Counted from the first letter of the stretch, positions 1 through 43,184 are shown. The stretch: DNA of 64,000 nucleotides from Perkinsus chesapeaki ATCC PRA-425 (GCA_013115145.1 JAAPAO010000057.1:35373-99372), one strand, 5' to 3'. Translations and numbers: made by a program. Notes: generated by a model from the sequence alone, not told the origin.

Positions 1-28
1 AAATGAGAGCAGGAAATCACTGCCTTAC

Positions 29-3000
29 CTGGGAGCTGTGAAGATGGTCTTCTTGCATGTGGGACAGCACCTTAGTTGTATCGCCTTGTGGTCACCTTTA
101 GAGGCATCATAAGTCATGTAACTGGGGAAAGAGCCTTACGATACTAACTCCTAGCCTCAGAACTTACGTATCCAAACCTTCAACGAAGAATGTATGCCCA
201 CAGTCGGGAAGCATGTAAAGTCTGGAGCCATCTTCCAGGGCAGATCCTATAGTGTCCAGGGATATAGTGCACTCAACATCAGGGTAGCAACGTGGGCAAA
301 TAGGACAGGGCTCGCCACAGAGGCCTTGACAAGGATGGCCACAAGCCAGCTCCAACGTACAGTGAGCATTGCAGCGCGGCCTCTTGCATGGCTCGTGGCA
401 TACTTGATCACATTTATGGTGGCGACAGCGCCAAAGGCAAGGCTCACGGCATGGGACACAGATCTCACAACAGGCCTTACCGCAGACATTTCCGTGAAGG
501 CAGCGCATACCACATTCTTGATCACATAGTTTTGTATGGGGCTCTCCACAAAGCTTATCGCACTTATGGCCACAAGCTAGCTCCTGCTCGCAATCTTCTT
601 TACATTGGACTTTAGTGTGATCATGTGCCGGTGAACAGAACTTAGGGCAGGGATGACCACAAGGTAGGACTCGCTCACATTGTCGCATGCACTCCTTCAC
701 GTTCTTACAGACTTGCTCTACATCATGACCGCATTGAGCCTTCACTGTCTGCTTGAAGGTGCACTCCAAACTGGTCGACTTGGACTTGTAGCATGCCACT
801 TGGAGTTGATGTCCACAAGAGAGAACGACCGAAACCATTCGCAGACAGCGCCTCTCGATAGGATCATCTTTCATAAAGCAGCGTACTCCCTTTTCGTGGC
901 CGCAATCAAGGATGACCGATACCGTAGCGACACAAGGTGTCTTGCAGACATCCATCGGCTCGGAGTCAGGGCGAGTACAATTACAGCAGAGGTTTGGGCA
1001 TTTATGGGAGCAGCCAGTAGGCCTCGGCCGATTGCATGGCTTATCACAGGTTACCAGTTCATGATCGAAGACATGGCAATTAAGGGGGCACCTATGACCA
1101 CATTGAGGAAGCAGGAGCTTGCAAGGTTCACGGCAGCCACCATCTTTGACATAGTAGAAGTCGGCAGGGTCGGAAATATGCTCCAAATTCTCAGGATGAT
1201 TACGACACTTCAATGTCAAAGTGGGTCCGATACGTCCCGGCTCGCGGAGGCGTTCAAGAACAACCTTCCAACTTTGGGAGCCTCCGAGCATTTGAGAGTT
1301 GCCCAGGATATATAGGCCTTGCTTCGCACGTGAGAGCGCCACAATAACTCTATTCTCTATGCCGACAAAGCCGATCTTCTTAGCCTCATTAGAACGGACC
1401 AGAGAGAGAATGACAACCTTGTTCTCTTCACCTTGGTAGTCGTCGATAGTAGCAACTCTGACACCAACGATCTCCTTGTTCTTGTTAGCTCGTATCTCCG
1501 GGTCCAAGTAGCTTCGCATAAGCCGCTTCTGACCGATGTAGGGAGTTAGTAGGGTGATGTCCTCGGGTTGATACTGCTGTGACCGAACAAGATAAAGAGC
1601 GAAGCTGGTGACGAACCTGGCTTCATAATCATTCTTTTTGGAGGTACCCTCAAATGACTGTTCGAGCTCTCTGTGGTCGAGGAAGTATACATCAGTAGCC
1701 ACACCACCAACTCTATCATACTTCTTAACCCTCTCGTGGTCGATGAGACCATCAGCGTAGAAATGCTTCACCAATTGGCTGACTTCTGGTCTCATACGAA
1801 GTTGAGTGGATAACTTAGCAAATGGGACGTTGAGGTTGATGAGCCTTTCAAAAAGTGATATGTCAAAGTGATTCTTCCGGCATAATTCAAAGGCATTAAT
1901 TTTCGGTCTCAACTGTTGATGGTCTCCAATGAGCACCACATGTTCCAGTTTGGGTGAGGACAAGCTGGATATCAGTTGACATTCTAATAGCTCCCCTGCC
2001 TCCTCGATGATGACCACCCTCGGAGCCAAGCGATGAACTAGATCCTGGTTGAGGGCTGCGTAAGTACTAGTCATACCGATAAGCTTGGAACCACGACAGG
2101 CCCGGAACAATACTGCCTTGCGATGCTGCATATAGGCCTTTGCCGCATCCTCGCCCTTTTTATAGATGTCTCGAAGCTTTGTCTTCATAGGGCCTTCAAG
2201 AGCTGTTCCAACAGCTTCGACTAGTCCTTGCCGACTACGTCGAGATGGTGCAGCTTGGTTAACACAAGTGGTGCCGGCATCATGGACAGCAACGTGACAG
2301 CCAGCAGCGACGACGGTTTCACCGAATGTTGTTTCTAGCCTCCCACGTATCTTCTGCTGGAAGCAAGCTGCCATCGTATACTCGTCCTTCCATGGCCGAT
2401 CAATCTCCAAGTCGTCGACATTATCATCAGAAGGGCGAGCAACCGCCAGGTTACCACCACGGCCACGAATAACGCCGTCAATTTCTATTCCGCCAAGAGC
2501 GGCCCCTCTTCCAGCACGGTCGGCAAAGAGCTGATCACCAATCATTCTCTCTTGCTCGATGAGGTCGAGGAGGTCCATGTCTAGGTCATCCATATCGATA
2601 TCATTGCGCCTTCGAGTTGGGGCGCTGAACTCGAATAGATGGTCAATAAGTCTGTCGACTCCTGCCTCCATCTCATCACGCAAGTCCTTTCTTTGACGGT
2701 CAGGCAGGCCGCAAAAGGATTCGTAGGCTCGCGACGATCGTCCAGGATCGAATCGATTAGACGTCTTCACTTTCCCCTTGATGTCGAATCCTCTCTGCTT
2801 CAACCAAGCCTTCTCACTTCCTGCCATCTGCCTCTCCGTGCCCTCCAACCAGTTCCTCAGAGATTCCATAGCAAACTCAGCGGCAAAATGGCCAAGCCTA
2901 GCAAAGCTCATTTTCCAGCCAACTGGTGCCAGAATCCTTCGGAATAGAGTGAAAGGGATATAAGCTAGGATGCACACAAGTTGGGCGTCACCACCTTGGT

Positions 3001-4858
3001 AGAGGGCCGCCACGGAGTTGAGAGTCCGGCAAGTAGCCTCCAACTGATCCTTGAAGTCTTGCCTCCGCTGATAGTCTTCGGAGTTCTCGCGCATCTTAGC
3101 TCGGACATGGCATTCTTGAAGAGCCTCGTTATCGGCCTTAGACCGGCCTCCGAATCTTACGATTTGGCCTGGCATATAAAGTAGTAGGTCTTCGAGGAAC
3201 TGATCCAGGGCATGGTTGGTGAGGGTCACCGCCAGCATTGGTTCCTCATGATATCTTCTGTCAAGGGCTGCCCTCGCCAGCCTGGCAAACTTCACCCCCA
3301 AGTAGCTTTTGCCCGTCCCAGGAGGCCCTTGGACAACGGCAATAGGACGGCGAAGGATATGTCTCATAGCAGTCTGTTGAGCGGGATCAAGCTCGATCCT
3401 TCTTCCTGCCACAGTTGGCCATGGACCAAGAGGATCGCTCTCGAGGGCCGTCGGGCCGTCACCGGTATATAAAGGTGCCAGGTCAATGCGAGCTCCTCGC
3501 AGATAGTCCGGTGCCTCGTCATGAGGGGTAATATCGCCTAGGAGCTTCTGGAGGAGGGGCATCTCTCTGAAGACCTCTTCATCACGCAGGAAGTCGAAGA
3601 CCGGCTTCTTGGCAAGGAAGTAATCAGGTGACTCTAGCATACAGTACTCGGCGTCAAACTGGAACTTGTGGAAGTTGGTCTCATCAAACCCAATACCGAC
3701 CGTTCCACCCTCTGACTTCTGGCCACCAGTCTCCCGGACGTCGAACTGTACTACAGTTGCGAATACCAGTGATTCGGGATCAGCATCACCACGTGGGGTA
3801 CCAGTGGTAGTACGAAAGAGGGCCACCAATGAACCATAAATCAAATGGGAGCCGAGGGTGAAATCGACAGGCCGCTGGCAAGTGAAGGCTACTTGAACAT
3901 AAGGATCGCCAGTATTAGTGACACCGAAGGGTTGCGGGAGAGCTTTCACATGCTCGTAGCACATAGCCTTCGCAGGCGCTCCAGTGGCAGTGGCGAAGCC
4001 AAGAGAATAGGAAAGGGCCTCCTTGAGAGGGATGAGGAACTCCTGGCGTAAACAGTAATAGTGTGTGGCCCTATACAGCAGCATGTCTGATGCTTTGTTG
4101 GCATCCCACTTGCCGGCTGCTCTATTGATGACCAGCTTTGACTTCAACTTTGTTGGTCTCACATTGTCCTTGATCTCATCCAAGGTAGGCATGAGATTGA
4201 ACTCATGCATCAGTGACTCGCATTCGGCCTCCTCATCAGGGGTAAGGTCTGTGGGGCCAACACCAGCCGCACCGCGGCGTGCTTGGAGATTGCGCACAGC
4301 ACCACCAGTCTTGTAGAACTCTATGCGTTGGAGAGGCATCAACAATGGTTCCTCGCTAGAGCCAATAAGCTTCGCCTGCTCACGGAACTTGTCTGCTGGG
4401 ATCAAAGCAGCAGCCTTCGTGTCGACCCGTCCGACTTCGACGAGGACCTTCATACAAGCAAGCATCTGGTCCATAGTCCGGATGTCTTCTACATAGTCAG
4501 GAGTGGCCACCACCAGACTCGCGCTCAAGGTTCGTATAACTTCATCGAACTGCTCCTTATCAAACGCTTCCATACACTTGGCGAGTAAAGAAAATAAGGC
4601 GTTGATCTCGAAGTCGTCGAAGTCTCTGATGTACGTGTTGAGCCTCTCTTTTAGACGCCAAACCTCCGACAAGCAGAAGTCGATATTCTTGTGACCATTT
4701 AGTCGCCTCACAAACACGGCGGCATCACGATAGCTGTCGATGCGGTCCTTCACTGCAGTTTTCTTAGGGACAGCAGAGTCACTATCTGAGTTGTGAGAGA
4801 ATCGGCAGGCTGTACCATTCCTGCATATCCCTCTCTGGTAGAAGCGACAGATAGGCAT
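29..4858 (-). CDS. ZNFX1: ZNFX1-like protein, paralog A: N-terminal CCCH finger, Upf1-like SF1 RNA helicase, NFX1-type Cys-rich fingers, RING-like domain; 3' end runs off the window
   Basis: CRFYQRGICRNGTACRFSH (CCCH); QGPPGTGKS (Walker A), IIEEAGE, IGDHQQLRP, TIDDYQGEEN, VALSRAK; repeated CxxxLxCGHxC; CTISLD...CGHTF. A 46-nt intron at 122-167 (GTAAGT..CAG) joins exon 29-121 (YMTYDASKGDHKAIQLRCCPTCKKTIFTAPR). A further intron starts at 28. Confidence 0.93.
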
Positions 4859-5368
4859 ATATGCTAGCGGAGAGGCACAACAATCTTGACATGAACCAGT
4901 TAAGTTTACTCTCCTGCTTGAACAGTACTGAGGTATGGTGGCGCGAACGAGCAGAATCCCTTGAAGGCCAACATTAATTCTGAATTTATACGGCTCTGCT
5001 CATTGGTTAAACTCAAGACTATGCGATGACAACTACGCTACCGTTAATGTCCTACAAATAGATTACGAAAGCTACGATATTATTTTACAATACGTATTCG
5101 TAACACAGAAGGGCTAAGCTAACCTGAGTGCTGTTGACTACTCTATTTCTCCCCACAACAATCGCTATTTTTAATCACGTAACGGCTCAATGGACTACCA
5201 CAGTTGCTTAATTAATGAAATATAATGAACAACACAACTCAGAATCATTGGGACTGAAGGTATGTTTGGTATAGGAGAGCGCGACTGACATGCTCTGGCG
5301 ATCTGTGATGGCTCGGTTGATTAGCTGAGGTCTCATTTCACTTTTTTGACCAATCCTGCCGCACGCGT

Positions 5369-5396
5369 GCACATTTTGTGCAACAAACGTGACGGG
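5369..5396. promoter_or_regulatory. Candidate upstream elements GCACATTTTGTGCAAC and CGTGACGGGCTTA (paralog A)
   Basis: Near-identical copies lie upstream of paralog B (11221-11233, 11259-11274); the flanking sequence is not alignable by eye. Confidence 0.45.
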
Positions 5397-5687
5397 CTTA
5401 ATTCGAGTCCTTCCGGAATTTCGGCGACAGGGGCTACGCTGCATCTAGGTTTGGAGACAAAAGAATAGCTTGCACCTCGTTGTGATGCAGGTGGTGAAGT
5501 CTACCACTAACTCGGTACCAAACTAGCCGGGTGCGGCTGATACTGAATGCTTATATGTTACGCAATAGAGCTGCAAGCCAACGATTTATCAAACGCGAGA
5601 GGATCAGTTGATAGAAACGTCTACTGTTAAAGAGAATCCTCACATTATATCAATCATTCTGATCTTCTATACTCAGTCACCAACTTG

Positions 5688-8600
5688 CTAATCTCCGCCT
5701 TCCACGAATTCGAAGATCGCTCTGTTTTCAGAGGCTAGTGTATCTTGTCCTCCGACTCGAGCCCCACATTCACGGCAAACAGCTGACTGCCTCGCAGCTC
5801 CACAATCCCCAATGAAATAAGGGTGTCCATTGGGACAGGCATACCAATGACCCACAGTAGAGCCAGTAATTTCGGCACTCATCGCAACATCAACTTGCTG
5901 ACGCTCTTCTCGATTGAGGGGGCCAAAGGTCTTCAACAACTTTTTCTTGACTTCGGAAAGTAGAGCTATTTGGGATTTCGCAGAGTTGCCGTACCTAATA
6001 AGTACATAGTACACAGCAATTTCATACGTCTGCATCTTTCTCACCTTGGTGCCGTATAGGTTGCCTGCTTACATGTAGGACAACACAGTAGTCTGACAGC
6101 GGTATGGTCGTTATTGGTAACTCGAGTGCTCATGTACCTAATTCTGGAGATGCCACAAAGAAGAGGTAGGAGACTCTCGTACTTGTCCAGCCCCTCAACA
6201 AAGAACGTATGACCGCACTCCGGAAGCCTATAGAGCTTAGCGTTATCTTCCAAGGATGAGCTAATTTCATCCAGTGTTATTGCGCACTGCAGGGTCGGCT
6301 CGCAAGTAGGACACGGTGGACATGGCTCACCACATAAGCCTTGACAAGGATGCCCACAACGTAGTTTTATTTTGCAGGGTTGGTCACACAGTGGCCGTTC
6401 ACACATCTCATGGCAGAACTTGGAGCACTTATGATGCTCACACTGTCGAGGGCAGGACTCCTTACATGGGGTGCAAATCTCGTAACATTTTCTTGGACAA
6501 CCATGACCATGTAGGCATTTAATTGGGCATGGCTCGTTACAAAGCTTAGTGTGAGGCTGCCCACATCTCATATCACATTTATGTCCACATAATAGATACG
6601 CGTCACACGGCCATTCACAGTCGGTAGTAACATGCCCGTGTTGAGGCAAGCACTTCTTTGAGCAACGGTGACCACATGGTAGCTTCATCTCGCAATCTCT
6701 GGTACATTTCCGAGGAGTATTGCATATCTGCTTCACTTCATGGCCACAGGCTGCATGGACAATGCTCTCAAAGTTGCACTTTACCGAACCAACATCGCAT
6801 TGTGCCTCGTGACACGGTAGGATCACTGTGTGGCCGCAAGGGAGCTCACAAGAGACTTTCACCAAACAGCGCCGCTCACCCAGGTCATCCTTCAGGAAGC
6901 AGCGAACATAGTTCTTGTGCCCACAGCTCAAGTCTACTGGTACTAGAATACTGCATGGAGTTTTGCACACGTCTTCAGGTTTAGAGTCTTTGTTAGAGCA
7001 CTCTGAGCACATGTGAATACATTTATGATTGCAACCATCTGGTCTCGGACGTGCACACGCTTTACGGCACTGGACTCCGTCATGATCGAATACATGGCAA
7101 AGATAGGGGCATACGTGACCACAAGCTGGCAATAGGGTACCACAAGGATATCTGCAACCACCGTCTTTCACATATTTGAAACCCTCGGGACCGGCCACTC
7201 GTTCGATATGGTCTGGATGTACACGGCACGTAAGAGTGAGAGCTGGACCAACTCGGCCTTGATCTCGTAGGACACGTAGTGGGCCTACCCAGCTCTTGGA
7301 GTTATCAAGAACCTTAGTGTTACCTAGAATAAACAGGCCTTCGCGTGCACGCGATAATGCCACAATAACCCTGTTCTCGATTCCAACAAAGCCTGGCCGA
7401 CACTCTAGATTAGAGCGTACCAAGGATAGGATGATAACCTTGTTCTCTTCACCTTGATAGTCGTCAATGGTCGCCACGTGCACGCCGCAACGATTGGAAG
7501 ATTTATCGGACTTGATACTCGGGTTGAGGTAATCCCGCATAAGCCGCTTCTGACCGATGTAAGGAGTTAGTAACGTGATGTCCTCGGGTTGATACTGCTG
7601 TGACCGAACAAGATAAAGAGCCAAGCTGGTGGCGAACCTGGCCTCGTAATCATTCTTTTTGGAGGTACCCTCAAATGACTGTTCGAGCTCCCTATGGTCG
7701 AGGAAGTATACATCAGTAGCCACACCACCAACTCTATCATACTTCTTAACCCTCTCGTGGTCGATGAGGCCATCAGCGTAGAAATGCTTCACCAATTGGC
7801 TGACTTCTGGTCTCATACGAAGTTGAATGGATAACTTAGCAAATGGGACGTTGAAGTTGATGAGCCTTTCAAGAAGTGATATGTCAAAGTGATTCTTCCG
7901 GCATAATTCAAAGGCATTAATTTTCGGTCTCAACTGTTGATGGTCTCCAATAAGCACCACATGTTCCAATTTAGATGAGGATAGGCACGCCATTAGCTGA
8001 CATTCTAACAGCTCACCAGCCTCCTCTATTATCACAACCCTCGGAGCCAGACGATGTACAAGATCTCGATTAAGTGCAGCAAAGGTACTGGTCATACCAA
8101 CCAATGCTCCACCTAGGCAAGCTCGCAACTGCACGCTTTTCCTTCGCTGGGCTTGGGTAGCTGCAACCTCATTGCCTTCCTGTTGCAACCTGGCAACTCT
8201 GACCGGGACAAACCGTCGCAGCGCTGCGCGTACTGGTGACCAAATTTGCCACCTTGTTCGCGGAGAGTCGTTCCGCTTGGCCAGACTATTGACTAAAGCA
8301 TGACACGCTACCGCAACGCAATCTGCTCCCACCATGGACTCAATCGCTACTCGGAGATATTGCTGGAAAGCCGAAGCCATAGTACGCTCGTTGGTATAGA
8401 GCGGCAAATCCATAGCTGTCTTACTCACATCGTCATCGGTAGGCCTGATAACTGGTACGTCGCCAAGGGAAGTACTATCTTCGACTGCACTGAACGTAGA
8501 GCTTAAGGGAGACACATTAACACTAGGCTTGTATCCAAATATCTCTTCCAGTGAGCTGTCGACGCCCGCCAGCATTTCAACCAACAAACCATTCTTACTG

Positions 8601-10883
8601 CCCTCATCAATCGAGTCGTAAGGGCGTGGGGTGCGTCTAGTGGAGCGCAGCGAACTTGAAGATACCCTGGTTTGATGTGATGACAGCCAACACTCCTCCG
8701 TAGCATATAGTTCATCTTCTGCCCCTTCCAGCCATCTATCCAGTGCAAGAATGGCAAAGTCCATTATTGAGCTACCAAGATACGCAAAGCTAGTCTGCCA
8801 GCCTCGAGGTGAGAGAACCTTGCGCAGTATGCTAAATGGAAGGTAAGCCAAGATACAAAGGCGCACACCTCTATCTTGACATAGCGCTGTTACTGCATTC
8901 ATTGATCGACCAATAAATTTTATCGACTTGGCTGATTTTTGGCGACCTGCATATTCTTCGGGTGTCTCCTTCATATTCTCCCTGATATTGCATGCCTGCA
9001 GCTCCTCATTGCCGCTCTTGGATCGGCCCCCAAATCGCATTAGACGCCCCTTCATGTGAGGCAGTAAGTCTTGTAGTAGCTGGTCGAGAGCATGATTCGT
9101 AAGAGTAATGGCAAGGATAGGCTCGCTGTGGCCTTTAGCATCAAGTGCTACTCTGGCGAGTCGCACGAACTTCACTCCCAAGTAGCTTTTGCCGGTACCG
9201 GGCGGTCCTTGTACCATCGCGAGTGGCGTCGAAAAAATGTGGTGCATCGCTACCTGTTGGGCTGGATCAAGCTCCACAGCACGCCCCTCTACAGTAGGCC
9301 AGGGCTCTAGAGGATCACCTCGGATCTCAGCCGGTTCGTCAACGCCTGTATATAGACAGCCAAGGTCGAGTTCAACCCCAGCAAGAAATGCAGGAGGCCC
9401 TGCCTCATGTCCGGCAATATTGCCGAGCAAGCGCGGAAGCAACAGGGTGTTCGAGAGGAGCTCGCCGTCTATCAGGAAGTCAAATACCGGCTTCTTGGCC
9501 AAATAGTAGTCCGGAGACTCCAGCATACAGTACTGCTTATCATAACATAACTTGGAAAAGTCCAACTGGCTCAAGTCGAGACACACCTCACCGCTGGACG
9601 ACCTGCCGGTTTTTTGAGAAGGCATCACATCAACCACGACAGCATACACTAGGGAGTCGCGAATGTACTGACCTTTCGGTGTCCCTGTAGAGGTTAAATA
9701 CAATACAACAAGGGAGCCATGTCGTAGGTTCGAACCAACCCCAAAGTCAACTGGACGCGGACAATCAAAACTCATCTTAACGCAGACTCCGGTACCGTCG
9801 ATGGCTTTGAAAGGTCGAGGTAGCATCTGAACTCTCTGGTGACATAGGCCACGAGGGGGGACTCCAGACTTGGTCATGTATCCGAGGCTATATCGCAGGA
9901 CCTCTTTCAAAGGTATGACCAGATCTTCTCGGAGGCAGTGATAGTGAGTGGCGCGGTAGAGTAGGAGTTCATCTTCGTTGGACGAATCCCAGCTATCTGT
10001 CTGTCGGTTAACCAACTTACTGATTAACGGGGGTGGTTTATCGTCTCCAGCGATCTCGGACATACTTGGCAGTAGCCGATCAGCAGCCATAAGAGCTGAA
10101 TACGCCTTAGCTTCTGGCACTGCAACTGACGACGTTGGAGTGATACTGAGCTCCTCCGGGCGATCTTGTTCAGGAGCTCGCAACTTTGACAACAAAGACT
10201 CGATTGTTTCAGATGCAACACCAAACATTGAAAGACGCTCACGTAGGAACGCTTCTGGGACCATCCTTGCTACTCGTGGATCAATCCTCCAAATCTCAAT
10301 GAGGACAATGATGAATTGAATTACGGCGTCAGCGCTAGCGGTGCTCCCAATGTAGTCGTGCGACTACTGCCAAGTTGGCGCTGAAGTCTTTGATTACCGA
10401 GTCGAAGGCTCTACCATCAAAAGCGTCCTTGCACTCGACCATAACTCTCACCAGCAACGCCAGTGACTCCTGGTCGATGTCACGAATGAACTCCTTGAGC
10501 CTGTCGCGCTCTTCGGAAAGGCGTGCCAGCATTGCATCGATATCCGTAGAGCGCTGTAGATCATTAAGGAAACGTCTTGCATCTTCGAGTGACCGAATCG
10601 GGGGCTCACGCGCCATGTATCGCCGTCTTTTAGCGGGATTACCACTTGCCGCCGGCGCATCCCTCTTGGCACCATTCCTTACAACAGCTTCGTTTACTGG
10701 CAAGGGAGACCACAATCTGGGCCTATTTTTGGACGAACCACGCTTTCTAGTTGAGTGAGCAGGCGAAGTAGAGGATACCTTGGTAGCAGAGTCGTGCGAA
10801 AACCGACACGAACTCCCATACCGGCAGTTGCCTCTAGCAAAGTCGCGGCATGGCTTCTCTGACACCCTTCGAGAGCGGTTCAT
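5688..10883 (-). CDS. ZNFX1: ZNFX1-like protein, paralog B, interrupted by a frameshift near 10358; terminal RZ-finger exon at 5688-5994
   Basis: ORF 10335-10883 (CCCH CRDFARGNCRYGSSCRFSH) and ORF 6041-10264 align colinearly with paralog A. There is an in-frame 45-nt intron near 6137-6181 and a 50-nt intron at 5995-6044, both at the same positions as in paralog A. The last exon encodes HWYACPNGHPYFIGDCGAARQSAVCRECGARVGG (RZ-finger pattern). Confidence 0.9.
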
Positions 10884-11220
10884 TCAGAGAGGAATAACAG
10901 GGAACACCTACGTAATCAAATGAGCATCTTGTGGTAATCGAAAACGGTGGGTGGTAATTAAAAAGCTAGACTTCTGCGAATTCTACGTCATACACAAGGT
11001 TCACGAAGTACTTAGAGTTAACTTGAACCTGACTTCGTGTAGCAGTGGGACACACTCTAACGCAAATAGACAACTGGCTCAACGAAACACAGTATAGAGT
11101 TAAGCTGGCAGCCCAGCAAACCTGGGTTTACTAGCCCTCCAAGCCAGATGTGACCTCCGATAAGCCACTGCAGCACGTCCATGGCTTGCGCTAATGTAGT
11201 TCAAACTATCACACAGAGAC

Positions 11221-11274
11221 CGTGACGGGGTTAGTGCATCACACATATGTTGAAGAGCGCACACTTTGTGCAAC
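11221..11274. promoter_or_regulatory. Candidate upstream elements CGTGACGGGGTTA and GCACACTTTGTGCAAC (paralog B)
   Basis: Match the motifs at 5369-5396, in swapped order. Confidence 0.45.
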
Positions 11275-11329
11275 GGCGGGCGGTTTGTGTTTGTATAGGC
11301 AAAATGGATTACTCTTTCGAAGCACACAT

Positions 11330-13730
11330 CGGCTCAAAATTAATAAAGACATGAGAAAAGAAACTTTCCGAGGGATAATTCATCTCTCACATTCTTAGAC
11401 TCAGAAAAGTCTGAGACTTTCACCTTTGCACTCGGCTCCTCATCACCCGCTGAGAGTCCGACTGATGCTCTAGTCCGGCGTAGATGTTTTTTAGAACTTC
11501 AGAACTCTGAGTTCGCGGTTAGAGGCAGCATACTGCTCTTCCCTACTCTAATACGGCTTAGACGTAACTTCTCGATGTCTATGCGACTCTCAGGAGTAAT
11601 AAGCAAGGGAAATGCCCGCGACGGTCCGAACGATCTCGCATGGAGGAGTTTTCAATAATGACCTTTTGATGGCAGGCTCGTATGGTTCATGTCATGGCAC
11701 TTATCATTTTAAACAAACGAACCGTCGCAAAGGAATAACTCTATATTATCGTCTGCCTATTGTATTCCGTAGGATCTATATCGATATAGTGATATGTCTG
11801 GTTCCTAGACTCTGGTATTGCCGTACTGCGAAGTCCGCAAATTAAGCACGGTGAAGTTTACGAACTGTATATGAACTGTAATATGTGATATTATATTAAA
11901 CAGCACTATGAGTTATGATAGTCAAGAGTAGCACTATCCTTTATAATAATAATGATGATGATGACGATGATGTTCCCGATTGCTCACGAGTTGATGCTCT
12001 CGATTCACGATGATTGACTAACTCGCACTAAGAAAATGTAAATAATGATACTCTTTGGATCGAATAATGCTGTAGAATGATAAGAATGCAACTACGATGA
12101 GATCCACGGGAAAGGGACCCTTGAATAAAACCGGAGCGATGCGATAGATAACCACACACGGGCGACATGCTGGTAATTGTCAAAATCTCGTCTGAAGGAC
12201 TTGACCATCCGACGCGCCTGTGCCGCATCGGAGAACCAAATACTTCCCCTGACAGAATGTAGCCCTTATTGACTCTAACTTCAATATGCTACTTACGCTT
12301 CAATATCTTCTTCGTTGGGAGTCGCTGTTGCTGGATTAACTGACAAAAAAGGAATGCTAAACTCCTATGCCGTCGAAATAAATCTCATCCTTGGTTATCA
12401 ACTTGCTTTGGTGGGCCATCGATTCAGTTTGATAATCGTTTCCGCGCTAGCACCTTTATTATTCTATAGCCAGGCTTCATTGGCCTATTAGCCGCACGAT
12501 AAGCTTACGTTTTGGCATCTTATCGATGATGAAGTGGACCAAGATGTCTAACGGAGACCTTCCACAAACAATTGCGTTCCAATTTGGGCCTTACCGAGAT
12601 GAGACGAATTTTACTTAATGCAATTATTCGTGACACGGGCATGAAAACAAGCAGACGCAGGCAGCTGGTGTACTGCCGCACCATCAACACTAGCAAGGTA
12701 GTCGACCCCTTCAACAGCCCCAGCTGCTGGCTGGAGTTTACGGTGAAATATGAAGGGTAGGCCATTTGGCGTTAAGTGAATGTGAAAGTAGGCATACTCT
12801 TCTCCACAAACTAATTTTTTGACAGGCTGTTTCATCTCTCGAAGCACTGATATCCTCGGTGCAAAGTGTTGTAGAAAGCAACAACCAAAAGACCAGAAAT
12901 TCCCAGAAAACCAGGCGAGGGCTCTCACGTTGGTGAGCACCGGAGAATGAGGGAGAGATCCCATTTGTTTCTCTAGGGAGGGATACTCTAACAGAGATGC
13001 ACGCTCCAAAGTAGTGCGAGAACGCCGCGCACATCGTTACTTTATACAAGTTCTTGTCTCAAGAGATCCTTGGTCGTACACATGGCAGTATCCAGATTTA
13101 TCAGTATACTTATGGAATCCATAATATGGATCCTGTATGACCAGAGCTGTCGGCCATCTTTTCAAAACTTGATTTCAGCTATGAAATTCTTGCCGTAGTG
13201 TGTTGCTGTGCACACGTCACATTGCGATGCAACAGATACATGATACTCATATCAGGGTTTTGTAATACTAATTTGAAAAAGGACTTCGGATTACGAATCA
13301 AGAACTAGAGGTTTAATATCCATGGAGTCCGAAGTACGGGACACTCATGAACCGTACGTCTTCGATTCATCTACCCAATACAGAACACTGTCACACCCTA
13401 TAACAATCTCAATGTATTGCCCACAAATTGTCTAAGTCTTCTGAATTGCCGACTCGGCAATGTCGACAAACGTTTAATTCATATACGGACATATTGCTTT
13501 GGTAACCATCAAGGTATAAACCCATTAGCTTTAGTGGGCGATACTGTCCCATTTGTCTCCAACAAGGCAGCACGGCAAACATGCCAAGTCTACCGACTAA
13601 AGAGCCCTTATAGGCCAGCATTGTTCTTATGCCATAGCTATCGTACTCGAATGAATAAAAAGCTTGTGATTTTTCCACGACGCCGGTGAGTGCAATACTT
13701 GGGGTAGTGTCTGCGTGCAGATTGTGCATC
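11330..13730 (-). pseudogene. Decayed multi-exon coding remnant, family unassigned
   Basis: Coding-like stretches (DAAQARRMVKSFRRDFDNYQHV; ERASLLEYPSLEKQMG; PLLITPESRIDIEKLRL) broken by stops and frame changes, with some GTAAG..AG intron-like segments. Confidence 0.3.
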
Positions 13731-22134: not shown

Positions 22135-23539
22135 CTACGACGGGGTAACCCAAACCGAAGCCGAGACGTTTTCTGATGCCGCCCTACAATTGGCTCTCCC
22201 AATATGGGCTTGTCTACTATATGCGTAAACCAGCGGCGGCGGCCTTTGTATTACCAAAGTTAGGTGGGAACTTAGCAACGTCCGCATCCTCCCCTCCGGT
22301 GGAGGCATCAGCGTCAACTATCCATCGTATTTCTGGTACAGCTGTCGGTGATGATGACGACACTGGAGGCACCATGGTACTGCTGCTGTTGTAACACCTT
22401 ATAAGAATTACTAAGCAACACAGATCTTATAAAGTAGGGTAGAAGAGTGCACACTAGTAGAAACAATGGTAACAGATGGGCTGTTGCTGCTGCTGCTTGG
22501 TGATGCCTATACCTCGTACATAGGCAAGATGACTTGGGGTTCACCACGCAGTCTAGATCTATAAAGAGATATTGTTAATATAGAGTAGTACTCAAGTATA
22601 TTACCGGAAGTAGTAGTAGAGGAAGTCACTGAGGATCAACAGGTTAAGGGTCTCACTGGCCATTTGAACACCCCTATTATCTGGATAAGCATACTCGAAA
22701 ATAAGAGGGTAACTAAATATAGAGTGATACATAATATAGTTATGGTATATTACCTGAACCAGAATATCAATGTGCAAGCTCTATTGACAGCAGTGAGAAC
22801 GACAAAGTTGGCCAGTGGAGCTGAGACAACCTTATCCTGTTGAAACATCCATAATTGAGGGAATAATGCCACTGCACATAACACCTATAAGATTTGAGTA
22901 AAGAGCGGTATGAGATGGATGTATTACCTCATAGAAGCAACAGAAGTATGATACATAGAATGAGCTATGACTTCTGCGTACTAGATACCATAGGAAGGCT
23001 AATACTGCTGTGAAGAGGTATATAAAACCATATCTATTGTAAATAAATGGCCTAAGAGGAAAGAAGAGCCTTCTTACCTGGTTAATGGCGTTGTGACTGG
23101 CACGCCCATCCTTTGAAAAAATGCTTGGCCAAAATTATCCTTCTGAGCTTCGTAGGATGTTTTATATCTTGTAGTAGTATAAACCAACATATATGTGCCA
23201 AACGCAGCATTAAGTATCTGATAGAAAAATGGTAAAAATAATAATAAGAGGTTCAACTGTTACATCCATGAGACCATACACCCAAAACGGTATGACAGTT
23301 GGTCGGAAGTGTAAGCCTAGTGGGTGACTTAAGAGATGAAGGCATCGAGCTACTGCCACACATCCTAGTGTCTGGAAGGATAGACCTGATGCTGAGTGGG
23401 ACTTCTTAACCTGTAATAGAGGGGTGAATGTGGTGGTATGGTATAATACTACTTGGTGATATACAGCAATAAAGGAGCCCAGTAAGGCTATGTCTGCCCC
23501 TAGGATAAGACTATCAAGGAAGAGGGATGTAGTGGGCAT
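22135..23539 (-). CDS. ERD2: ER lumen protein-retaining receptor family (ERD2/KDELR-like)
   Basis: SASGLSFQTLGCVAVARCLHL; AVALFPQLWMFQQDKVVSAPLANFVVL; multiple TM segments across short exons. Confidence 0.75.
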
Positions 23540-24132
23540 TGCTGCTAAAACTATATAGGTCACTCATCAGCTGTAGATTACAACAAGTAGACTTTTAGGT
23601 AAGTAAATGGCCATCTTCTATCATTTATAGGCTTAAATTAAGAAGCGGTATGAATGCCGCTTTCGCCAATACCAGCCTCCCTAAGCTATCATTAACGTGT
23701 GCTTTATGTACTTGAGCATTGGGTAATTATCTAGTGCTGTACTGTGCCATTCTATCACCCTTTCCCGAGGCTCAGGCACTCCAAATCAGTGTATCTCTTT
23801 TGTAGCTCCCTCACTCAAATGGTTAGCATTGTAGTGTACGTCAACCCCTCCAAGTTCATGCATTCAATTAACCGTCTAGATACCCCCAGACGGACCAGTC
23901 AAGCAGCAGCAGCAGCTGTCAGCTGGAATTGTACTTTTTATTATCGCGCGCGCCATTATAATCGATATCTGCGCACTTCGAGCACTGTCGCTTGCGTCTT
24001 CCACAAGGCAGGAAAATCCTTCTATTAGGATTGTCAGGGCACGTTGGATGGGGCCTCTAGTTATTCCTTACATTCGGCTTTTGTTATGGTTATTGATATA
24101 TATTTGTGGTGCTTAGTAGCTTATTGTAGCGT

Positions 24133-25481
24133 ATGTCATCATTTAGAGTCTTTGTAGACCTTCGGGCTGAATCCATTAGTATTATAGATTCCTTAATAAC
24201 CAGGGAAGTATCATCTCGGTTAGGCCGTCATGATGGTATATGCAATATGGCTTTAACTGGTGAGACAGCTCCAAGTAAGCATAAGGCCTTATACGTCTCC
24301 CCCTAGCATCTGGTCAGGTTTCGGGCTTTCTATTAATGAGAACTGTGACCCTACTGTACAGAGTGATCACCTAGCTGCATTCAGACGACTGGATCCTAAT
24401 GGTTTTCAATCGGGACCAGTGCTGGCTAGAGGATCGTTGTCGTTACCTATACGAGACGGCAAACTTAAGAGAGGTAGAGGAGGGGGTATGGGGAGGTAGT
24501 TAAGGGCTTATCAGGCACATGGCAAGGTATATACCTTATGAACTGCTCCCATAAAGATTCAAGAGCTGTTATCGCTGTTACCTGCATTCCAGCGGTTAGT
24601 ACTAAACACTTTGAGGTATCAGGGGCTAGAGGGGCACATATAATACCTAGGGAGAAATATGATAGGGTAAGGGAAGGGGGCTGTTAGGGGGAGGAGAGGA
24701 GGAGGATTCATGGGCTTAGATGCTGGCTGGTGATGATGATGTTGTTATTAACTTTACAGAGCTACATACATCGGCATCATTATCAATATTAGATGGTGAA
24801 GGAGAGGAGGCTAAGACACTTGAAGAGACTGTGTCAAAAGTAGTACCAGAGACTTGGAACTATGATATATTCCAACACGTTTATGAGGGACCAGATGATA
24901 TGCCAGGTAGTAGGGCTCGAAAGGTCGTGGGTTCAATTCCTGGTGCAGGCCATATGAAAAGCACACTTCTGGGGTGCAGCCATTCTTTGTCTTCCTATGA
25001 GTTAAATGATCCAGAGGGCGCCCGGCCGTATTTGACAGAGCATAGGAACTCTGGTGGATGGGGAGTAGGTCACACTCGAACACTCGAGCTTACAGCTGTT
25101 AAGGCTTCTAAGAACCTCACCACGGCCAAGGTTAAGGTAAAAAGATATTTCCGAGGTTGATTGAATGCATCAGAAGTATCTTAGGTTGATGAGGAGGTTA
25201 TGAATCAACTTGATTTAGCGTGTGATAAATATAGTATGGTTCATCTTAGTGTTTATGATGGTTATTCCCTAGTAGTTGGCTGTGATATAATACCGTCTGT
25301 GCGCCCGGAGATTTTACCCTATGCAGCTGTAGGGAACGGTCGTACTGTGGACGTCCCTTTAAAGCAAGGATGTAAGGTATGGGTAGTACCACCAAGGATG
25401 TCAGGTGACACTATTATGGAATGTCAATTATATGCTACTGTAAAGATTGTCTACTTTGACCCTAAACCTGATAAAGAGTAA
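24133..25481 (+). CDS. UPF0047/YjbQ-family protein with three tandem YjbQ-like domains
   Basis: Domain 1: LSINENCDPTVQSD..SLSLPIRDGKLKR|GTWQGIYL. Domain 2: RGAHII..LHTSASLSI..YEGPDDMP|GHMKSTLLG..LTEHR. Domain 3 (degenerate): VDEEVMNQL..MVHLSV..GRTVDVPLKQG. Confidence 0.8.
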
Positions 25482-25741
25482 AGCCTAAGAGGTACTCCAT
25501 TAAGAGTTTATTAAATACCTTGTTCGCTGCTGTGTGTTTCATCCTCCGTCCGTATGTGGTGTTGATTAATACAAGTATACTGCAATGCACGGATAACCCT
25601 GATGCCATTTTGCTGTATTATGCATTGCTTACTATTATTAAGAACCATTTCGATTCACATAGTAAGCCAATATTATACTAACCAAACAGTCGAGTAGCTC
25701 TTCATAATGGACGGTAACTCTGACACTAGAGTTTTTTTCTG

Positions 25742-26695
25742 ATGTCATGTCCGGTCCCTCCACCTATCATCTCTAATGGGTCTACCTTGCACTCCCCCCC
25801 AAGGCACCCATCGAAGCTGGATATGCCACTACAGCCTGGGCCAGTGCATCTGGAACCGGGCTTCCTATCACAGCTCATCTCCGGTGGTACCGCTGCAGTT
25901 ATCGGCAGAACATGCACCGCTCCGCTAGATAGGGTAAAAATATTAATGCAAGTGGAGGGGAAGGCAACAGCAGCAGCATCTACGGTTGGTAGGGGTAGCT
26001 GGGTGATGGTACTAATGAGGACGGCAAGGGAACAAGGGTTAGCCTCATTATGGAGGGGTAACATGGCCAACCTTATAAGAATCTTTCCGACACAGGCTTT
26101 GAGGATGACTATATTCTCCAGGCTCAAAGAGCTTCGTCGAAGTTATGGCATTCAGACTACACAACAGACCATTGTACCAGCGCTGCTGTCGGGAATGATC
26201 TCGGGGGCATCAGCTTGTTTTCTAATGTATCCTTTGGATGTTGCTAGGACAACTATGGCAGCTCAGGCATATCAGACGACGCTTACTGAGGAGCTGAGGA
26301 GGATGGTACGGGAAAGGACAATGTTCAGAGGCCTAGGGGTTAATATGATAGAGATTGCACCTTATGTTGGGGTGTCATTAGGGAGCTATGATTATATGAA
26401 AGAGCGGTATGAGATGAAGCATGGCCATCTTAGTGCCTGGGATAGGCTACTAATAGGCACCTGTAGTGGTATATTAGCTGTATCCACCTGTTTCCCTTTG
26501 GATACAGTTAGACGTTATATGATTGTACATAAAGTGCCTTTCAAGAAAGCAATGGTCGAGCTACTTGGAGCTGGTGGACCAATAAGGCTGTATAGAGGTC
26601 TACCTGTATCAGTGCTAAAGGCAGCTCCTACTGCTGGTATAACACTGATGGCTAATGATATGTTAAAGCAGGCCTTTGCAGCTATAGGACGGTGA
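25742..26695 (+). CDS. Mitochondrial carrier (SLC25), intronless
   Basis: Three carrier repeats with PLDRVK, PLDVAR and PLDTVRR; LWRGNMANLIRIFP. Confidence 0.95.
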   Translation: MSCPVPPPIISNGSTLHSPPRHPSKLDMPLQPGPVHLEPGFLSQLISGGTAAVIGRTCTAPLDRVKILMQVEGKATAAASTVGRGSWVMVLMRTAREQGLASLWRGNMANLIRIFPTQALRMTIFSRLKELRRSYGIQTTQQTIVPALLSGMISGASACFLMYPLDVARTTMAAQAYQTTLTEELRRMVRERTMFRGLGVNMIEIAPYVGVSLGSYDYMKERYEMKHGHLSAWDRLLIGTCSGILAVSTCFPLDTVRRYMIVHKVPFKKAMVELLGAGGPIRLYRGLPVSVLKAAPTAGITLMANDMLKQAFAAIGR

Positions 26696-26873
26696 TGGTA
26701 GGACAATGAAGAATAGGGATAGTAATATGCACAGAGGCAGCGGGAGGCAGCAGGAGGAGGAAGAAGAAGAGGAGGAATGCCTCAAAGTTATAAATTTTCT
26801 AATTCGGCCAGTTACGCTGTCTTGGGTTACTTGTAGATGATTCTGATAGCTGCTGTTGCTGCTTTTAAATAAA

Positions 26874-29401
26874 TGTCCATCAGCCTGAGTAGGTCCCCTC
26901 GGGACATGTCCTCCCTTCGTATGGCCTGTAGTACGGGTAACAGTGTTGGGCCGGGAAGTTATGATCCAAAGAAGCCCAGGGGTGGCCCTATTACGGTAGT
27001 GGAGACAAGTTCGACATCGGACAAGTGCTTTTTGTAATAGGTTTATGAGGAGGTTAATGAAGATGGTACAGTAGAGACAATTCAGCTATTTAAACGAGGG
27101 ACCGAGGTCAGGAGGGACTCATCTGAGGAAAAGTCGGTATGAGTATGATTAGGTACCGTTCCAAAGCCTTGAGGAGAAGTTTGCTGTATATAATAGAGCT
27201 AATGCATCTAAAACACCAGGTAAGGGTCATAGGATAATAATAACATCATCATCGACGTTTGGACTTGCTCGACAAGTTTTCACCTTCATGTCACCGCAGC
27301 CATCCGCATGGCTACTTCCGCTTAACAACAATCGCAGCATCTTTGTTAATAACTTACAATTTTGGGCAGGTCCTGGTACATACGCACCGATGTTGTCATG
27401 CTCTAAAGATTGTGGTAAATCAGCAGGATATGGTCTTAAGTCAAGGTCAGCTAGGCTAGCACCAGTAGCACCAGGAAGCTCACAGTATACAGCAAGCACT
27501 GTAGTGGATAATCCCGGTAATACAGGAGTAATAGACATGGTAGAGGTGATGATGGTCAGGGCCAGGGGCATACTTTAGTGGTGATGATATGACCAATGGT
27601 CCTAGTGTACGTCGACGGTCAGAGGCACCAATAAGGATACCAACTAGTAGAGTGTCAGCAAGTATACCAGTTAGAAGACTATTGCCAGGGGTAAACAAGG
27701 GTGAGATTGTTGTTGATAACTTTTATTATTTGTTATTAGGATACAGTAAAGGATTCAGCAATACCTACGATGGACTTCACAGGCGACAAGGATGACACCT
27801 GTGGACCTGATAGATACTCAATAGAGTCGGCTAGAAGGGTTACAGGACCCGGGGTTAGGGATGCACAGTGGCACAAGTATAGGGAACAGAGGAAGGTCTT
27901 CCAACCGAGCCACTCTATATCCAACGAACTGCCAGACCCGGTGGTGCCTGGACCAGGACAGTATCATGGGATGAACCATAATAATCGTAAACTGCCATCA
28001 TTGGGAACTAGTCAGTTCCGAAGTAGAGTCCCTATGGCTCATCAAATAGTAGTGTACCCTGAGGGCAAGGTGGGGGGCAGCAGCTCAAGTCAGTATGGTG
28101 ATGAGTTGGTCTCTACTGCTGCTAATACAGCGACTACAACAGGAGGCTTTACCGATGGTGGCAACTACTGTGGGCATTATAGCTCAGCAAGGATGGCTAT
28201 AGCTGCCCATAAGGCCGCAGTCGCCCCGTTCTCATCAAGTGTACCAAGATCAGATGGTTGGGCACGGACCGTAGAGGCACCATACACTACATCACACCGA
28301 GGTGGCCCTGGACCGGGGGCTTACCGTCAGCCCCGATCAAACTCACTAAAGGATGCAGTGACAGTATTGGCCAGGCCAGGAGGCAAAGCTGCTGGCACTG
28401 ATAGCTTTACTACCAAAACTATTAAGCATAAGCTTACTACAGTGGAGGGGGTGCACGTCCGTATGGTTGATGATCCTGTGGTGACACTTGGGCAACATAG
28501 GAGGTATTATGGCGTACATAACCCTTTGAACATGGCAATAGTATCCGAGGCACTTGATAACCGTGAACCTATGATATCATTTAATACTACTGATGGAAGA
28601 CCGTGCAATAAGCCTTTACTTCAGACCAGTCCAGGACCAGATAAGTATGCCAATGGTGAAGCCCTTTCCATATCCAAAGCTACTATGAACAGGGCCACTG
28701 TCGGGCGGAGAGGGGTCTTTGGAACCTGTGCGAGTCGCAGTGCGGGCTCGGCTTTTGTAGACAGCAAAGATTCCCAAGGGAAACGTAAACGGCATGAGCT
28801 GGAAGAGGAGATGGATAACCTTAATTCACCTCGAATGGAGCCTCGAAAGGGCGCCAACTATCGAATGATTAAGGTAGTCAGAGACAACTCTATGAAGAGA
28901 GTGGTCGAGCCACCAGTAAAGTGTCAAGGTCCTGGCCCAGCATCCTACAGTCCACGGGAACCAGAGGGTGGGGCGTATAGGAACCCTTATAGACTTGGAA
29001 AGAAAAATCATCTCAGTTTTGGGAGTGCTAATGAGAGGTTCGGTAAGAGTGGTGGCGTTTTTATGGCGGCCGATGTACCAGGACCGGGTCAGTATAGTAG
29101 CACACAAGTGGGACCGAAACAACCAGGCGGAGCAGCCAATACGGCCAAGTCTAAACGGTTTGGTAGTGGTGTTGTTGGTGTTGACTATACTGCTATTACA
29201 TCTACAGATGGGGCAGTAGGGCCAGGGTCTTATGACCAACAGAGGGCTGATAACTGTTCGGTGATGGCCTCTAAGACACACAATGTTACTATGAATACAC
29301 CGTGGGCACAGCTTAAGTCAGCAGCAAAGAATAATAGGAAAGTAGTAGTACGACCGAACCTTGTACGGTTTAGAGGCGTTGCTGGAACAGTACGACAATG
29401 A
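26874..29401 (+). CDS. SHIPPO/ODF3-STPG-type PGPGxY repeat protein (axonemal)
   Basis: Many PGPG(S/A/Q/T)Y units: VGPGSYDP, GPGTYAP, PGPGQYH, PGPGAYR, PGPDKY, PGPASYS, PGPGQYS, VGPGSYD. Confidence 0.85.
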
Positions 29402-29559
29402 CGAGCATAATGCAACATTGCTTAGATGTACCATGGTGGCCTCTGCCCCCGCCGCCCTTCGGCAGCAGCATCATCATATTGATGTTCCTATTCGACCTGT
29501 TGCTTTGTGTTTATCTATGTTGTCTTGTAGTAGTGGTAGCAGTGGTTGCTATACTGTAT

Positions 29560-32500: not shown

Positions 32501-34088
32501 CCCTTTAGCTCGTATATGTTTAAGGTTATCTATCCAACTAAAGTAGCACTGGTACGTGGAAATCACGAAGATAGATCTATGAACGCCAACTACGGTTTCC
32601 TAGCAGGAGCCAAGCAACGCTTTGGTCCCGTCCAAGGTACCTAACAATACCCGACTTTAAAAGATGCTAATTCGATATTATAGGGGAGTCTGTGTGGGAG
32701 AGGGCCAATGAGGCATTTGAATACCTTCCTTTGGCTGCTGTTGTTGAGACTAGAGATGCTCCTTATAACAGTCAATCAGGGCGATGTCTACCACCAGTGT
32801 ATGATAATAATAATAATCATTACATATCACCTAGCAATAACAATAGGGTGCTTTGTATACATGGAGGTGTGGCAGCAGAAGCATTCATTAATATTACGTT
32901 AGCTGGTCTTAATAGGTATTGGTGATAATATTATATCATTAGAAGACCTCTCTGGCATCCCAAAGCCGATAACTATTCCAGCATGCTCAGTAGCTCCAGC
33001 CGCATCAACCGACGAGCTTTATCCAGGTTGAAACCTCAATATGCCATATTCATTAAAGGGCATCTTCAGGCACTACTTGTCGGCGTGAAAGGGTTATTTT
33101 AGATGCTTTGTGGAGCGATCCTACCGAGAATGACAATGTGGGGGTATTCACAATATCTATTACTATACTGTCATATTTAGGTATTGGGAGTACACCTGTC
33201 CCCTCGTGGGCAATCGACTTGCCGGTTTGGTCCTGACAGAGTAGCTGAGTTCTGCGAGCGTAACGACCTCAAGCTCATTATTAGAGCTCATGAATGTGTT
33301 AAAAGTGGTCATGAGTACGAACTGCATCCTCTATGACGGCGGCATCTCTCAGTGACATGATGTCTCTGCGTCAGGTACTTTGCTTCTGGTATGTTATTAA
33401 CAGTCTTTTCGGCTACTAATTATTGTAATGTATACCAGAACGATGGTGCTATGATAGTCCTAGTAGTGGACCCTGAAACAGGGGAGGTTAGGATAAGGAA
33501 AAGCAGGTTATTAATATAACTGTATATATTGTAGATTGATGAGCATGCACAAGTGATCAAGTGCGGGGAGTCTGGACAAGATACATCAGTTGGATGGAAT
33601 GCATCACAGTTCCGTAACCCATCACCACTTCGTAATGGTGGAAGAGATATCACCATTCCTGAGTACTCAACACAACAACAGCAACAGCCACCGTCATACA
33701 GTACCCTTCTCACTTCAACCCTCTGTATTGCTGGATATTATGTGAGATCAGGTCTATCCAATGTGATTAACGGTGGCTATACTCTGCCCTTAGCAGCAAC
33801 CTCTTCCTCTTACCCAGCAACTCAAAAAACTAACCAATGTAAGACCGCTTTGTGTCGCCTGTCCCCATTTTGTCATCACTCTTTATAAAGTGTGTCGACA
33901 CTAGCGTTGATTTAGATTACCAAACTGTCTCCTATCAACCAGCCCCTCAACAGCAGTTCACTGCCACCGTACAGCAGCAGCAGCAGACTTCGTACCCTTC
34001 CTCTGGCCACTACCATAGCCCTTTCCTTCGTCCGGTGTCCTCTGCATCCCGACTCAGCAGTGGTGGTCTACCACAGCACGCCGCATGA
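29560..34088 (+). CDS. PPP-family Ser/Thr phosphatase with N-terminal EF-hand(s), PPKL-like catalytic core and a Q/S/P-rich tail
   Basis: YFDEDRNGQLDLKE (EF-hand); GDIHGQ, GDFVDRG, RGNHE, CIHGG, LWSDPTEND, FGPDRV, IIRAHE, FSATNYC. An assembly gap lies within the gene. Confidence 0.9.
29850..29945. other. Assembly gap (N run)
   Basis: Run of N. Confidence 1.
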
Positions 34089-34294
34089 TTATTGTTTTCA
34101 TTAGTAGTAATTAGAACCCTGAAGGGGCCGCCACGAACCGCCAGCAGCAGCAGCAGTATCATTCAAGAAGTAGCTTAGCATGCATAATCGAAGAAGTAAA
34201 TCTTCCCAGTCAATAGTATTAATAGTGTTGTGTATACAAGTACTGGTATTGGTGGTGTAACATACATGTAGATTGATTGTGTTATTGTCCCTTG

Positions 34295-43079: not shown

Positions 43080-43184
43080 ATCCACAACCGACTAGCTTGA
43101 TTAGTATTATGAAGATTGATGCTGATAATAAGACATTACAGGACTGCCCTATAGACTTCTAGTCCTTACGTTTCCGCACACTGT

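Follow-up and report, generated by a model that had tools for sequence, protein, structure and literature searches.

The 64,000-nucleotide stretch of Perkinsus chesapeaki ATCC PRA-425 DNA considered here (the window, C3026:35373-99372) carries at positions 29-10883 two genes, A and B, which belong to the family of ZNFX1, an RNA helicase with ubiquitin ligase activity that protects human cells from viruses. The map of open reading frames (ORFs) and the Pfam matches place both genes head-to-tail on the minus strand, in agreement with a first reading of the sequence (the original prediction). They are members of an array of four ZNFX1 paralogues, A to D, of which only these two lie within the window, and a fifth copy, E, is found elsewhere in the genome. 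Sequence comparison makes the assignment of A, B, C and D to the ZNFX1 family solid, and among the five copies gene A is the sole one in which no lesion is detected. The locus is best explained as a four-gene ZNFX1 array that probably serves in the surveillance of foreign or aberrant RNA, such as that of viruses and transposons.

Family identity and domain architecture

When the sequences in PDB are searched with gene A by phmmer, the best match is human ZNFX1 (9q9z; E 1.6e-118, 400 bits), while UPF1 (1e-35), Aquarius (5e-32) and Sen1 (1e-15) all remain at or below 125 bits. The alignment with 9q9z spans the 1B barrel, both RecA lobes and the first zinc fingers. Two other superfamily 1 (SF1) ORFs of the same genome have Sen1 as their best match and score far lower with ZNFX1. 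These two ORFs (C2184:45961-49794, 1278 amino acids, and C1478:44332-46104, 591 amino acids) were used as outgroups in a maximum-likelihood tree of 41 sequences, aligned with MAFFT. In this tree the ZNFX1-like sequences are split from the Sen1-like helicases of the same genome at 100/100, and the Perkinsus sequences form a clade of their own (support 100/99). The Perkinsus clade is placed among protist and fungal sequences (a GHVR-prefix transcriptome sequence, which is its sister, and sequences from Rigifila, a chytrid, Glomus and Cyanophora), outside a metazoan clade supported at 99/97. The ZNFX1-type identity claimed in the original prediction is thus borne out by the best match, by the tree and by the structural match of the ARM domain described below. 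Membership of the NFX1 transcription factor family, which combines NFX1 fingers with PHD/RING and R3H domains and has no helicase, was considered and rejected, as a helicase is present here and Pfam finds no R3H domain.

The predicted order of domains in a full copy is CCCH finger, ARM domain, 1B barrel, UPF1-like SF1 helicase with a 1C insertion, NFX1-type stalk, Miz-like domain, short helix and RZ finger. In the original prediction the CCCH finger, the helicase, the NFX1 fingers and the RZ finger were correctly ordered, while the ARM domain and the 1B barrel were not mentioned and the RZ finger was ascribed to gene B alone; it is present in both genes. Among the Pfam models, zf-CCCH_4, AAA_11, AAA_12 and ZnF_RZ score as expected from that prediction, but zf-NF-X1 does not.

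All features of A and B are on the minus strand, and coordinates without a contig name refer to the window. The CCCH finger of gene A (4790..4855, residues 2-23) scores 2.5e-6 with zf-CCCH_4 (27.5 bits at a cut-off of 24.6). It is followed by the ARM domain (4283..4750, residues 37-192), assigned from an AlphaFold2 model of residues 1-230 and its structural match. The model, made from a shallow alignment of 7 rows, has a mean predicted local distance difference test score (pLDDT) of 78.7, and of 88-94 over residues 41-160. Its best structural match by VIA-align is the ARM domain of human ZNFX1 (9eve_A; Z 15.5, root-mean-square deviation 2.9 Å, 151/173 residues), and the next, beta-catenin, has a Z of 11.0, i.e., 4.5 below the top; a Foldseek search with the helical N-terminal model gave no significant match. 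The ZNFX1 domain that corresponds to the 1B barrel (3629..3961, residues 300-410) is borderline with PF25396: at a cut-off of 27 bits, A is just under (26.6), D scores 25.4 and E 27.5. Residues 194-598 of A align with residues 397-792 of human ZNFX1 at 3.7e-23.

The SF1 helicase core of A (1295..3391, residues 490-1188) is covered by AAA_11 (residues 490-613) and AAA_12 (residues 999-1188), and has the Walker A motif GPPGTGKS at 3305-3328. Its Walker B motif at 1994-2011 is deviant and reads IIEEAG, as it does in all five copies, and the form EEA[AG] is found in 134/149 top relatives. A Walker B of the form EEAx in place of DExx has been described for ZNFX1 (Naydenova et al. 2025, 10.1101/2025.10.14.682297). 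The 1C insertion (roughly 2159-3019, about 290 amino acids) contains the acidic motif I-x-x-E-R-x-[ILM]-D-D, which aligns with metazoan ZNFX1 relatives and is found in A, C, D and E but is absent from B. In gene A this motif (2534..2602, DIDMDDLDMDLLDLIEQERMIGD) is a candidate autoinhibitory plug, or blocking helix, and would be the probable counterpart of the negatively charged helix of the human enzyme (residues 828-836).

The NFX1-type stalk of A (287..1123, residues 1246-1524) has six C-x-H-x-C-x3-C cores and three CGH-x5-C units. The Cys-rich region is assigned to such a stalk because of these six cores and because residues 1218-1327 align with the fingers of human ZNFX1 at residues 1351-1450. 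Between the stalk and the RZ finger is the segment that the original prediction called RING-like, with the pattern …C-x-I-[ST]-L…LP[ED]CGHTFF…CP-x-C…. The site II ligands C-x-H…C-x2-C are present in it, and there is no C-x2-C after the His. A hidden Markov model (HMM) seeded from this region of B finds the equivalent segment in 71 relatives, including sequences from Ciona (5e-32), Owenia, Naegleria, Cyanophora and Glomus. Human ZNFX1 was reported in 2025 to have a single-zinc, Miz-like hybrid between RING and U-box, and the segment appears to fit this description. In every copy the Miz-like domain is interrupted in its middle by an intron.

ZnF_RZ scores 8e-24 in A, 4e-20 in B and 1.4e-22 in E. 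The RZ finger of A keeps, at human spacing, the equivalents of human C1849, H1853, C1860, C1869, C1872 and H1881, so that four zinc ligands, the nucleophile Cys and the general-base His are all present.

The likeness of gene A to human ZNFX1 (9q9z, 9eve) thus extends from the ARM domain, the 1B barrel and the SF1 helicase with its EEAx Walker B, over the long 1C insertion with the acidic motif, the NFX1-type stalk and the predicted Miz-like hybrid, to an RZ finger with four zinc ligands, Cys nucleophile and His base. The two differ in that A has an added N-terminal CCCH finger and a coding sequence of 1708 codons, by its exon coordinates, against 1918 amino acids in the human protein. They differ also in that about 55 amino acids link the Miz-like domain to the RZ finger where human ZNFX1 has a helical bundle of about 200-300. 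Furthermore, the Perkinsus genes are multi-copy and tandem, with a variable stalk, and P. chesapeaki has no interferon or MAVS context. RNF213 has an RZ finger with the same zinc ligands and the same Cys/His catalytic pair, but this giant E3 ligase is of the dynein-like AAA+ type and has neither an SF1 helicase nor an NFX1 stalk nor a CCCH finger.

Gene A is encoded by three exons. Exon 1 (168..4858) is a 1564-codon ORF with a GT donor read at 167-166, in which no lesion was found, and contains the CCCH finger, the ARM domain, the 1B barrel, the helicase, the zinc-finger stalk and the first half of the Miz-like domain. Intron 1 (122..167, 46 nucleotides, GTAAGT...CCCCAG) splits the Miz-like domain at a position that is also interrupted in B, C, D and E. 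Exon 2 (29..121) encodes the second half of the Miz-like domain, YMTYDASKGDHKAIQLRCCPTCKKTIFTAPR, and is followed by an intron of 55 nucleotides, which begins at 28 and continues past the edge of the window. Just outside, at C3026:35006-35345, 27-366 nucleotides before the window start, is the RZ exon.

In gene B, the CCCH finger (10791-10856; zf-CCCH_4 3.2e-9) and, by alignment with A, the first half of the ARM domain are encoded by an ORF of 182 amino acids at 10338..10883. The main ORF (6041-10264, 1407 amino acids, with AAA_11 and AAA_12) contains, from its first ATG to the intron (6183..10264), the remainder of the ARM domain, the 1B barrel, the helicase (7316-9271), the stalk and the first half of the Miz-like domain. 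Between the two ORFs, homology to A changes frame between 'NLAVVA' and 'DYIGST', which places a frameshift within 10346..10370, at about 10358. An intron that would link the two ORFs was rejected as a cause, since the frame switches within a few bases and the sole GT-AG pair spans 24 nucleotides. The frameshift severs the CCCH finger and half of the ARM domain from the rest of the gene, so that the CCCH-headed gene B of the original prediction does have its finger, but out of frame with the helicase ORF. Downstream, an intron of 45 nucleotides (6138..6182, GTACGA...AATTAG) in the Miz-like domain is in frame and stop-free, and the ORF reads through it. The exon with the second half of the Miz-like domain (6045..6137), an intron of 50 nucleotides with its splice sites read (5995-6044) and the RZ exon (5691..5994; RZ finger 5724-5867, stop codon 5688-5690) complete the gene. 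The public model P0001 agrees with both 3' splices; it begins 12 codons inside the first ATG of the main ORF and omits the CCCH part. The spacer that separates the start of A from the end of B (4859-5687, about 830 base pairs) has a lower GC content, about 45%. No Rfam families and no tandem repeats were found in window positions 1-12000, spacer included.

The array, its divergence and its lesions

A search with gene A through the assembly (41.7 Mb, 3544 contigs), together with ORF maps, shows that the array on contig C3026 consists of four head-to-tail genes of the ZNFX1 family, all on the minus strand, in the order B (41063-46255), A (35006-40230), C (29484-34778) and D (22600-28668). C and D thus lie upstream of the window, at C3026:22600-34778. 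The two halves of the fifth copy, E, are found at the start of contig C146 and at the end of contig C2639, and join inside an intron. In these searches exons were taken singly, with spliced regions represented by the public proteins P0001, P0159, P0194 and P0196. For alignment only, B, C, D and E were each pieced together from their ORFs, an X standing for a stop codon and NNN for the frameshift of B. The duplication in the original prediction is real, but its size was understated, as there are four linked copies and a fifth elsewhere and not two. The phylogeny places the genes in the ZNFX1 family, in a clade of Perkinsus sequences only.

Outside one tract, to which we return below, the DNA of the paralogues is 47-57% identical, and third positions at conserved residues are identical in a fraction of only 0.3-0.5, from which follows that synonymous sites between paralogues are saturated. 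The tree has the shape (D,(C,P. olseni P0004b)) and ((E,P. olseni,P. marinus),(B,(A,P. olseni))), so that A, C and E each pair with orthologues from P. olseni or P. marinus; the branch of B is about 3 times longer than that of A. The P. olseni model P0004 is chimeric, with the tail of the A orthologue fused to the C orthologue, and because it joins these two, the order A then C must predate the split of the species. Between Perkinsus species, orthologues are 67-78% identical overall. Their identity is highest in the helicase core (86-98%), and lower in the ARM domain (about 56-64%) and the 1C insertion (40-75%). These comparisons of sequence point to an old, Perkinsus-specific expansion with birth-and-death evolution.

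The paralogues differ in their modules. The head has one CCCH finger in A, B and E and two in D, while in C and its P. olseni orthologue it is a Gly/Lys-rich N-terminus with no CCCH finger. The stalk has 3 CGH-x5-C units, each of about 29 amino acids, in A, B and E, while C has 7-8 of them and D has 14. At the general-base position of the RZ finger, A and its P. olseni orthologue have His, B has Thr, and a Tyr is found in E as well as in its orthologue from P. olseni; in C and D the RZ finger is degenerate.

The exception to the divergence is a tract of 292-445 nucleotides, in which A, B, C and D, the broken C included, are 96.8-98.7% identical. It covers residues 927-1115 of A, from Walker B to the start of RecA2, and is delimited by identity among A-D at 1514..2080 in A (core 1676-1930) and, with approximate outer limits, at 7535..7969 in B (core 7697-7951). 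Third positions in the tract are 92-100% identical and its end points differ between pairs of genes, while the unlinked copy E is only 64-70% identical in the same region. Non-allelic gene conversion that has recurred among the linked copies A-D gives the best account of the pattern in this part of the helicase core (about 0.3-0.45 kb). RNA structure was also considered as a cause of the homogenised tract, and was rejected at a fold z-score of 0.14.

Disabling lesions are found in 4/5 copies, i.e., in B, C, D and E. Besides the frameshift of B, gene C lacks one base in a run of five C within the codons for Walker A, which shifts the frame, and has a TAA and a TAG inside conserved fingers. Gene D has a TAG before its last fingers and a remnant of the RZ finger without the nucleophile Cys. 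In copy E, a TGA stands where P. marinus and P. olseni both keep a Cys codon.

Copy E has, in addition, an intron of about 130 nucleotides immediately behind the VQG codons, where Walker A begins (L021:2228-2359, contig C146). No intron is found there in A-D, and the site adjoins the spot of the one-base deletion in gene C. Just downstream of the RZ exon of copy E, on the minus strand, there is an ORF of 313 amino acids (C2639:34117-35055; L022:6118-7056), which encodes four CCCH fingers and then an ARM-like domain, with no helicase after it. It is 31% identical to residues 4-184 of gene A (E 1e-33), and by its sequence resembles a head of the ZNFX1 paralogues that occurs on its own.

Possible role and alternative explanations

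Human ZNFX1 has recently been shown to couple a helicase, which RNA activates, to a ubiquitin ligase with two sites; papers on the human and vertebrate protein are Naydenova et al. 2025 (bioRxiv, 10.1101/2025.10.14.682297) and He et al. 2026 (PMC13710534). By homology with it, single-stranded RNA would enter the helicase groove of a Perkinsus protein and displace the acidic plug, whereupon ATP hydrolysis, and translocation with it, would be switched on. The C-terminal module would then be activated: the Miz-like domain would recruit an E2 enzyme, and the RZ cysteine would take over ubiquitin and relay it to a substrate. The CCCH finger would probably add RNA binding, and the ARM domain would probably mediate dimerisation. 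Gene A is intact and has all six RZ residues; the fast-evolving B is without the acidic motif and the RZ general base.

That the array is engaged in surveillance of foreign or aberrant RNA remains probable in our judgement, by homology with animal ZNFX1, but several points weigh against it. The lesions in 4/5 copies mean that the array may hold a single working gene; they could, on the other hand, be null alleles of a polyploid genome, and the frameshift in the C5 run of gene C could be an assembly error. A generally error-ridden assembly is argued against by the long intact ORFs that persist elsewhere. Neither zf-NF-X1 nor zf-MIZ nor U-box gave a Pfam match on the Cys-rich tails, even at E 10. 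Since the linker between the Miz-like domain and the RZ finger has only about 55 amino acids, much shorter than in metazoan relatives, the cooperation between domains may differ from that in the human enzyme. Finally, no matches to RNase III or to RNA-dependent RNA polymerase (RdRP; PF05183) were obtained in the assembly, in an exon-wise search that cannot prove absence.

Consider then the case that only gene A is functional, while B, C, D and E are decaying duplicates, so that the locus would amount to one housekeeping-like ZNFX1 gene beside pseudogenes. We regard this as possible, if doubtful. Each of the four copies offers something in its favour: B is frameshifted, lacks both the acidic motif and the RZ His, and has its threefold longer branch; C is broken at Walker A and has two stop codons in conserved fingers; D has its TAG before the last fingers and a degenerate RZ finger; and E has a TGA in place of a conserved Cys codon. 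Yet the terminal branches of C and E are short and both copies have undamaged orthologues in sister species, from which follows that their lineages have been maintained for long. Furthermore, B and D retain open ORFs of 4-5 kb, the lineage of E has kept the Tyr at the RZ base position across species, and the lesions may be single null alleles if the genome is polyploid.

It is unlikely that the genes act in small-RNA silencing, and not as an immune sensor and ligase. They would then mark target transcripts for amplification of small interfering RNA or for heritable silencing, as ZNFX1 orthologues do in fission yeast and nematodes (PMC9276528). These orthologues, S. pombe Hrr1 and C. elegans ZNFX-1, are RNA interference cofactors from the same helicase family as the Perkinsus genes, and Hrr1 comes closest in sequence to the human 1C insertion. 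An Argonaute is probably encoded in the genome, with adjacent PAZ and Piwi matches at C255:875-4067, and a second Piwi match is found at C3210:7974-8153. Of the silencing machinery that the original prediction proposed to look for, it is thus the Argonaute that is found, while for the Dicer-type RNase III and RdRP the exon-wise search described above gave no match. Hrr1 and ZNFX-1 work with RdRP. The negative results for RNase III and RdRP speak against silencing, but as weak evidence, because the RdRP search had no positive control. Gene A, moreover, keeps a complete RZ finger and a Miz-like domain, as the vertebrate enzyme does, whereas C. elegans ZNFX-1 is without RZ.

Quite unlikely, on our analysis, is that this unicellular parasite has in the array a functioning repertoire of RNA-sensing ubiquitin ligases with combinatorial variation. 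Duplication would here shuffle heads (one CCCH finger, two CCCH fingers, Gly/Lys-rich), stalks (3, 8 and 14 CGH units) and E3 tails (complete, base-less and dead), while repeat expansion and local gene conversion would add further variation and the lesioned copies would serve as conversion donors or regulators. If true, the array would be a protist counterpart of the fast-evolving immune gene clusters of animals.

Two explanations are very improbable. That the genes belong with Upf1, Sen1 or Aquarius, as housekeeping helicases of RNA surveillance, a case raised by the original prediction itself, is suggested by the common UPF1-like SF1 fold (AAA_11 and AAA_12), but refuted by scores three times lower than with ZNFX1, by the Sen1-like ORFs of the same genome and by the 100/100 split in the tree; the Perkinsus genes share neither best match nor clade with UPF1, SEN1 and Aquarius, nor accessory domains such as the CH domain of UPF1, and those families have no ARM, NFX1 stalk, Miz-like or RZ domains. 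That the genes come from a mollusc host, by acquisition or contamination, would agree with the parasitism of Perkinsus on bivalves, with the numerous ZNFX1-like genes in the mollusc host and with the Haliotis proteins among the relatives, but hardly with the place of the Perkinsus clade outside the metazoan one, with orthologues in three Perkinsus species or with introns as short as 45-55 nucleotides.

Relatives in other lineages

A full HMMER search finds 22,629 relatives at E <= 0.001 and 2,370 at E <= 1e-30, while nearly all matches in word-index protein searches are Perkinsus proteins. The named top matches of the HMMER search are ZNFX1 proteins of insects, echinoderms, molluscs and hagfish; others, unnamed or called "RZ-type domain" proteins, are from Rigifila, Naegleria, Willaertia, Cyanophora, a chytrid, Glomus and a ciliate. 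The closest named relatives outside Perkinsus are called NFX1-type zinc finger-containing protein 1, a name that one P. olseni protein in UniRef also has, and P. marinus XP_002773991 already goes by "NFX1-type zinc finger protein-containing protein, putative". Prior knowledge or annotation covers the family, its architecture and its occurrence in Perkinsus; in the library searched, no paper connects Perkinsus with ZNFX1.

The match between the anatomy of these alveolate genes and that of human ZNFX1, together with the relatives in Naegleria, Cyanophora, Rigifila and fungi, indicates that the whole ZNFX1 machine predates animals, and it may go back to early eukaryotes. Perkinsus is culturable, and is an economically important parasite of oysters and clams. 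For these reasons gene A would be a practical non-animal model for the ancestral task of ZNFX1. The paralogues are natural variants, with no plug motif, no general base or a long stalk, and could inform work on structure and function. Of interest is also the evolutionary pattern: the tandem family is old, its modules vary, gene conversion is local and lesions are many.

The CCCH head, present in A and B as the original prediction stated, is not special to this lineage. The clearest case is Cyanophora paradoxa P0036, which has two CCCH fingers, the ZNFX1 domain, the helicase, the Miz-like segment and RZ in the same overall order, and from this follows that the CCCH-headed architecture is not unique to Perkinsus. 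Penicillium italicum P0005, which goes by the name 'Zinc finger, CCCH-type', combines a CCCH-like N-terminus with a helicase, and in Nowakowskiella P0017 the CCCH match is only sub-threshold. In the present data set these three are single representatives with no evidence of tandem arrays, while Perkinsus forms its own clade; their helicases are about 35-40% identical to those of Perkinsus.

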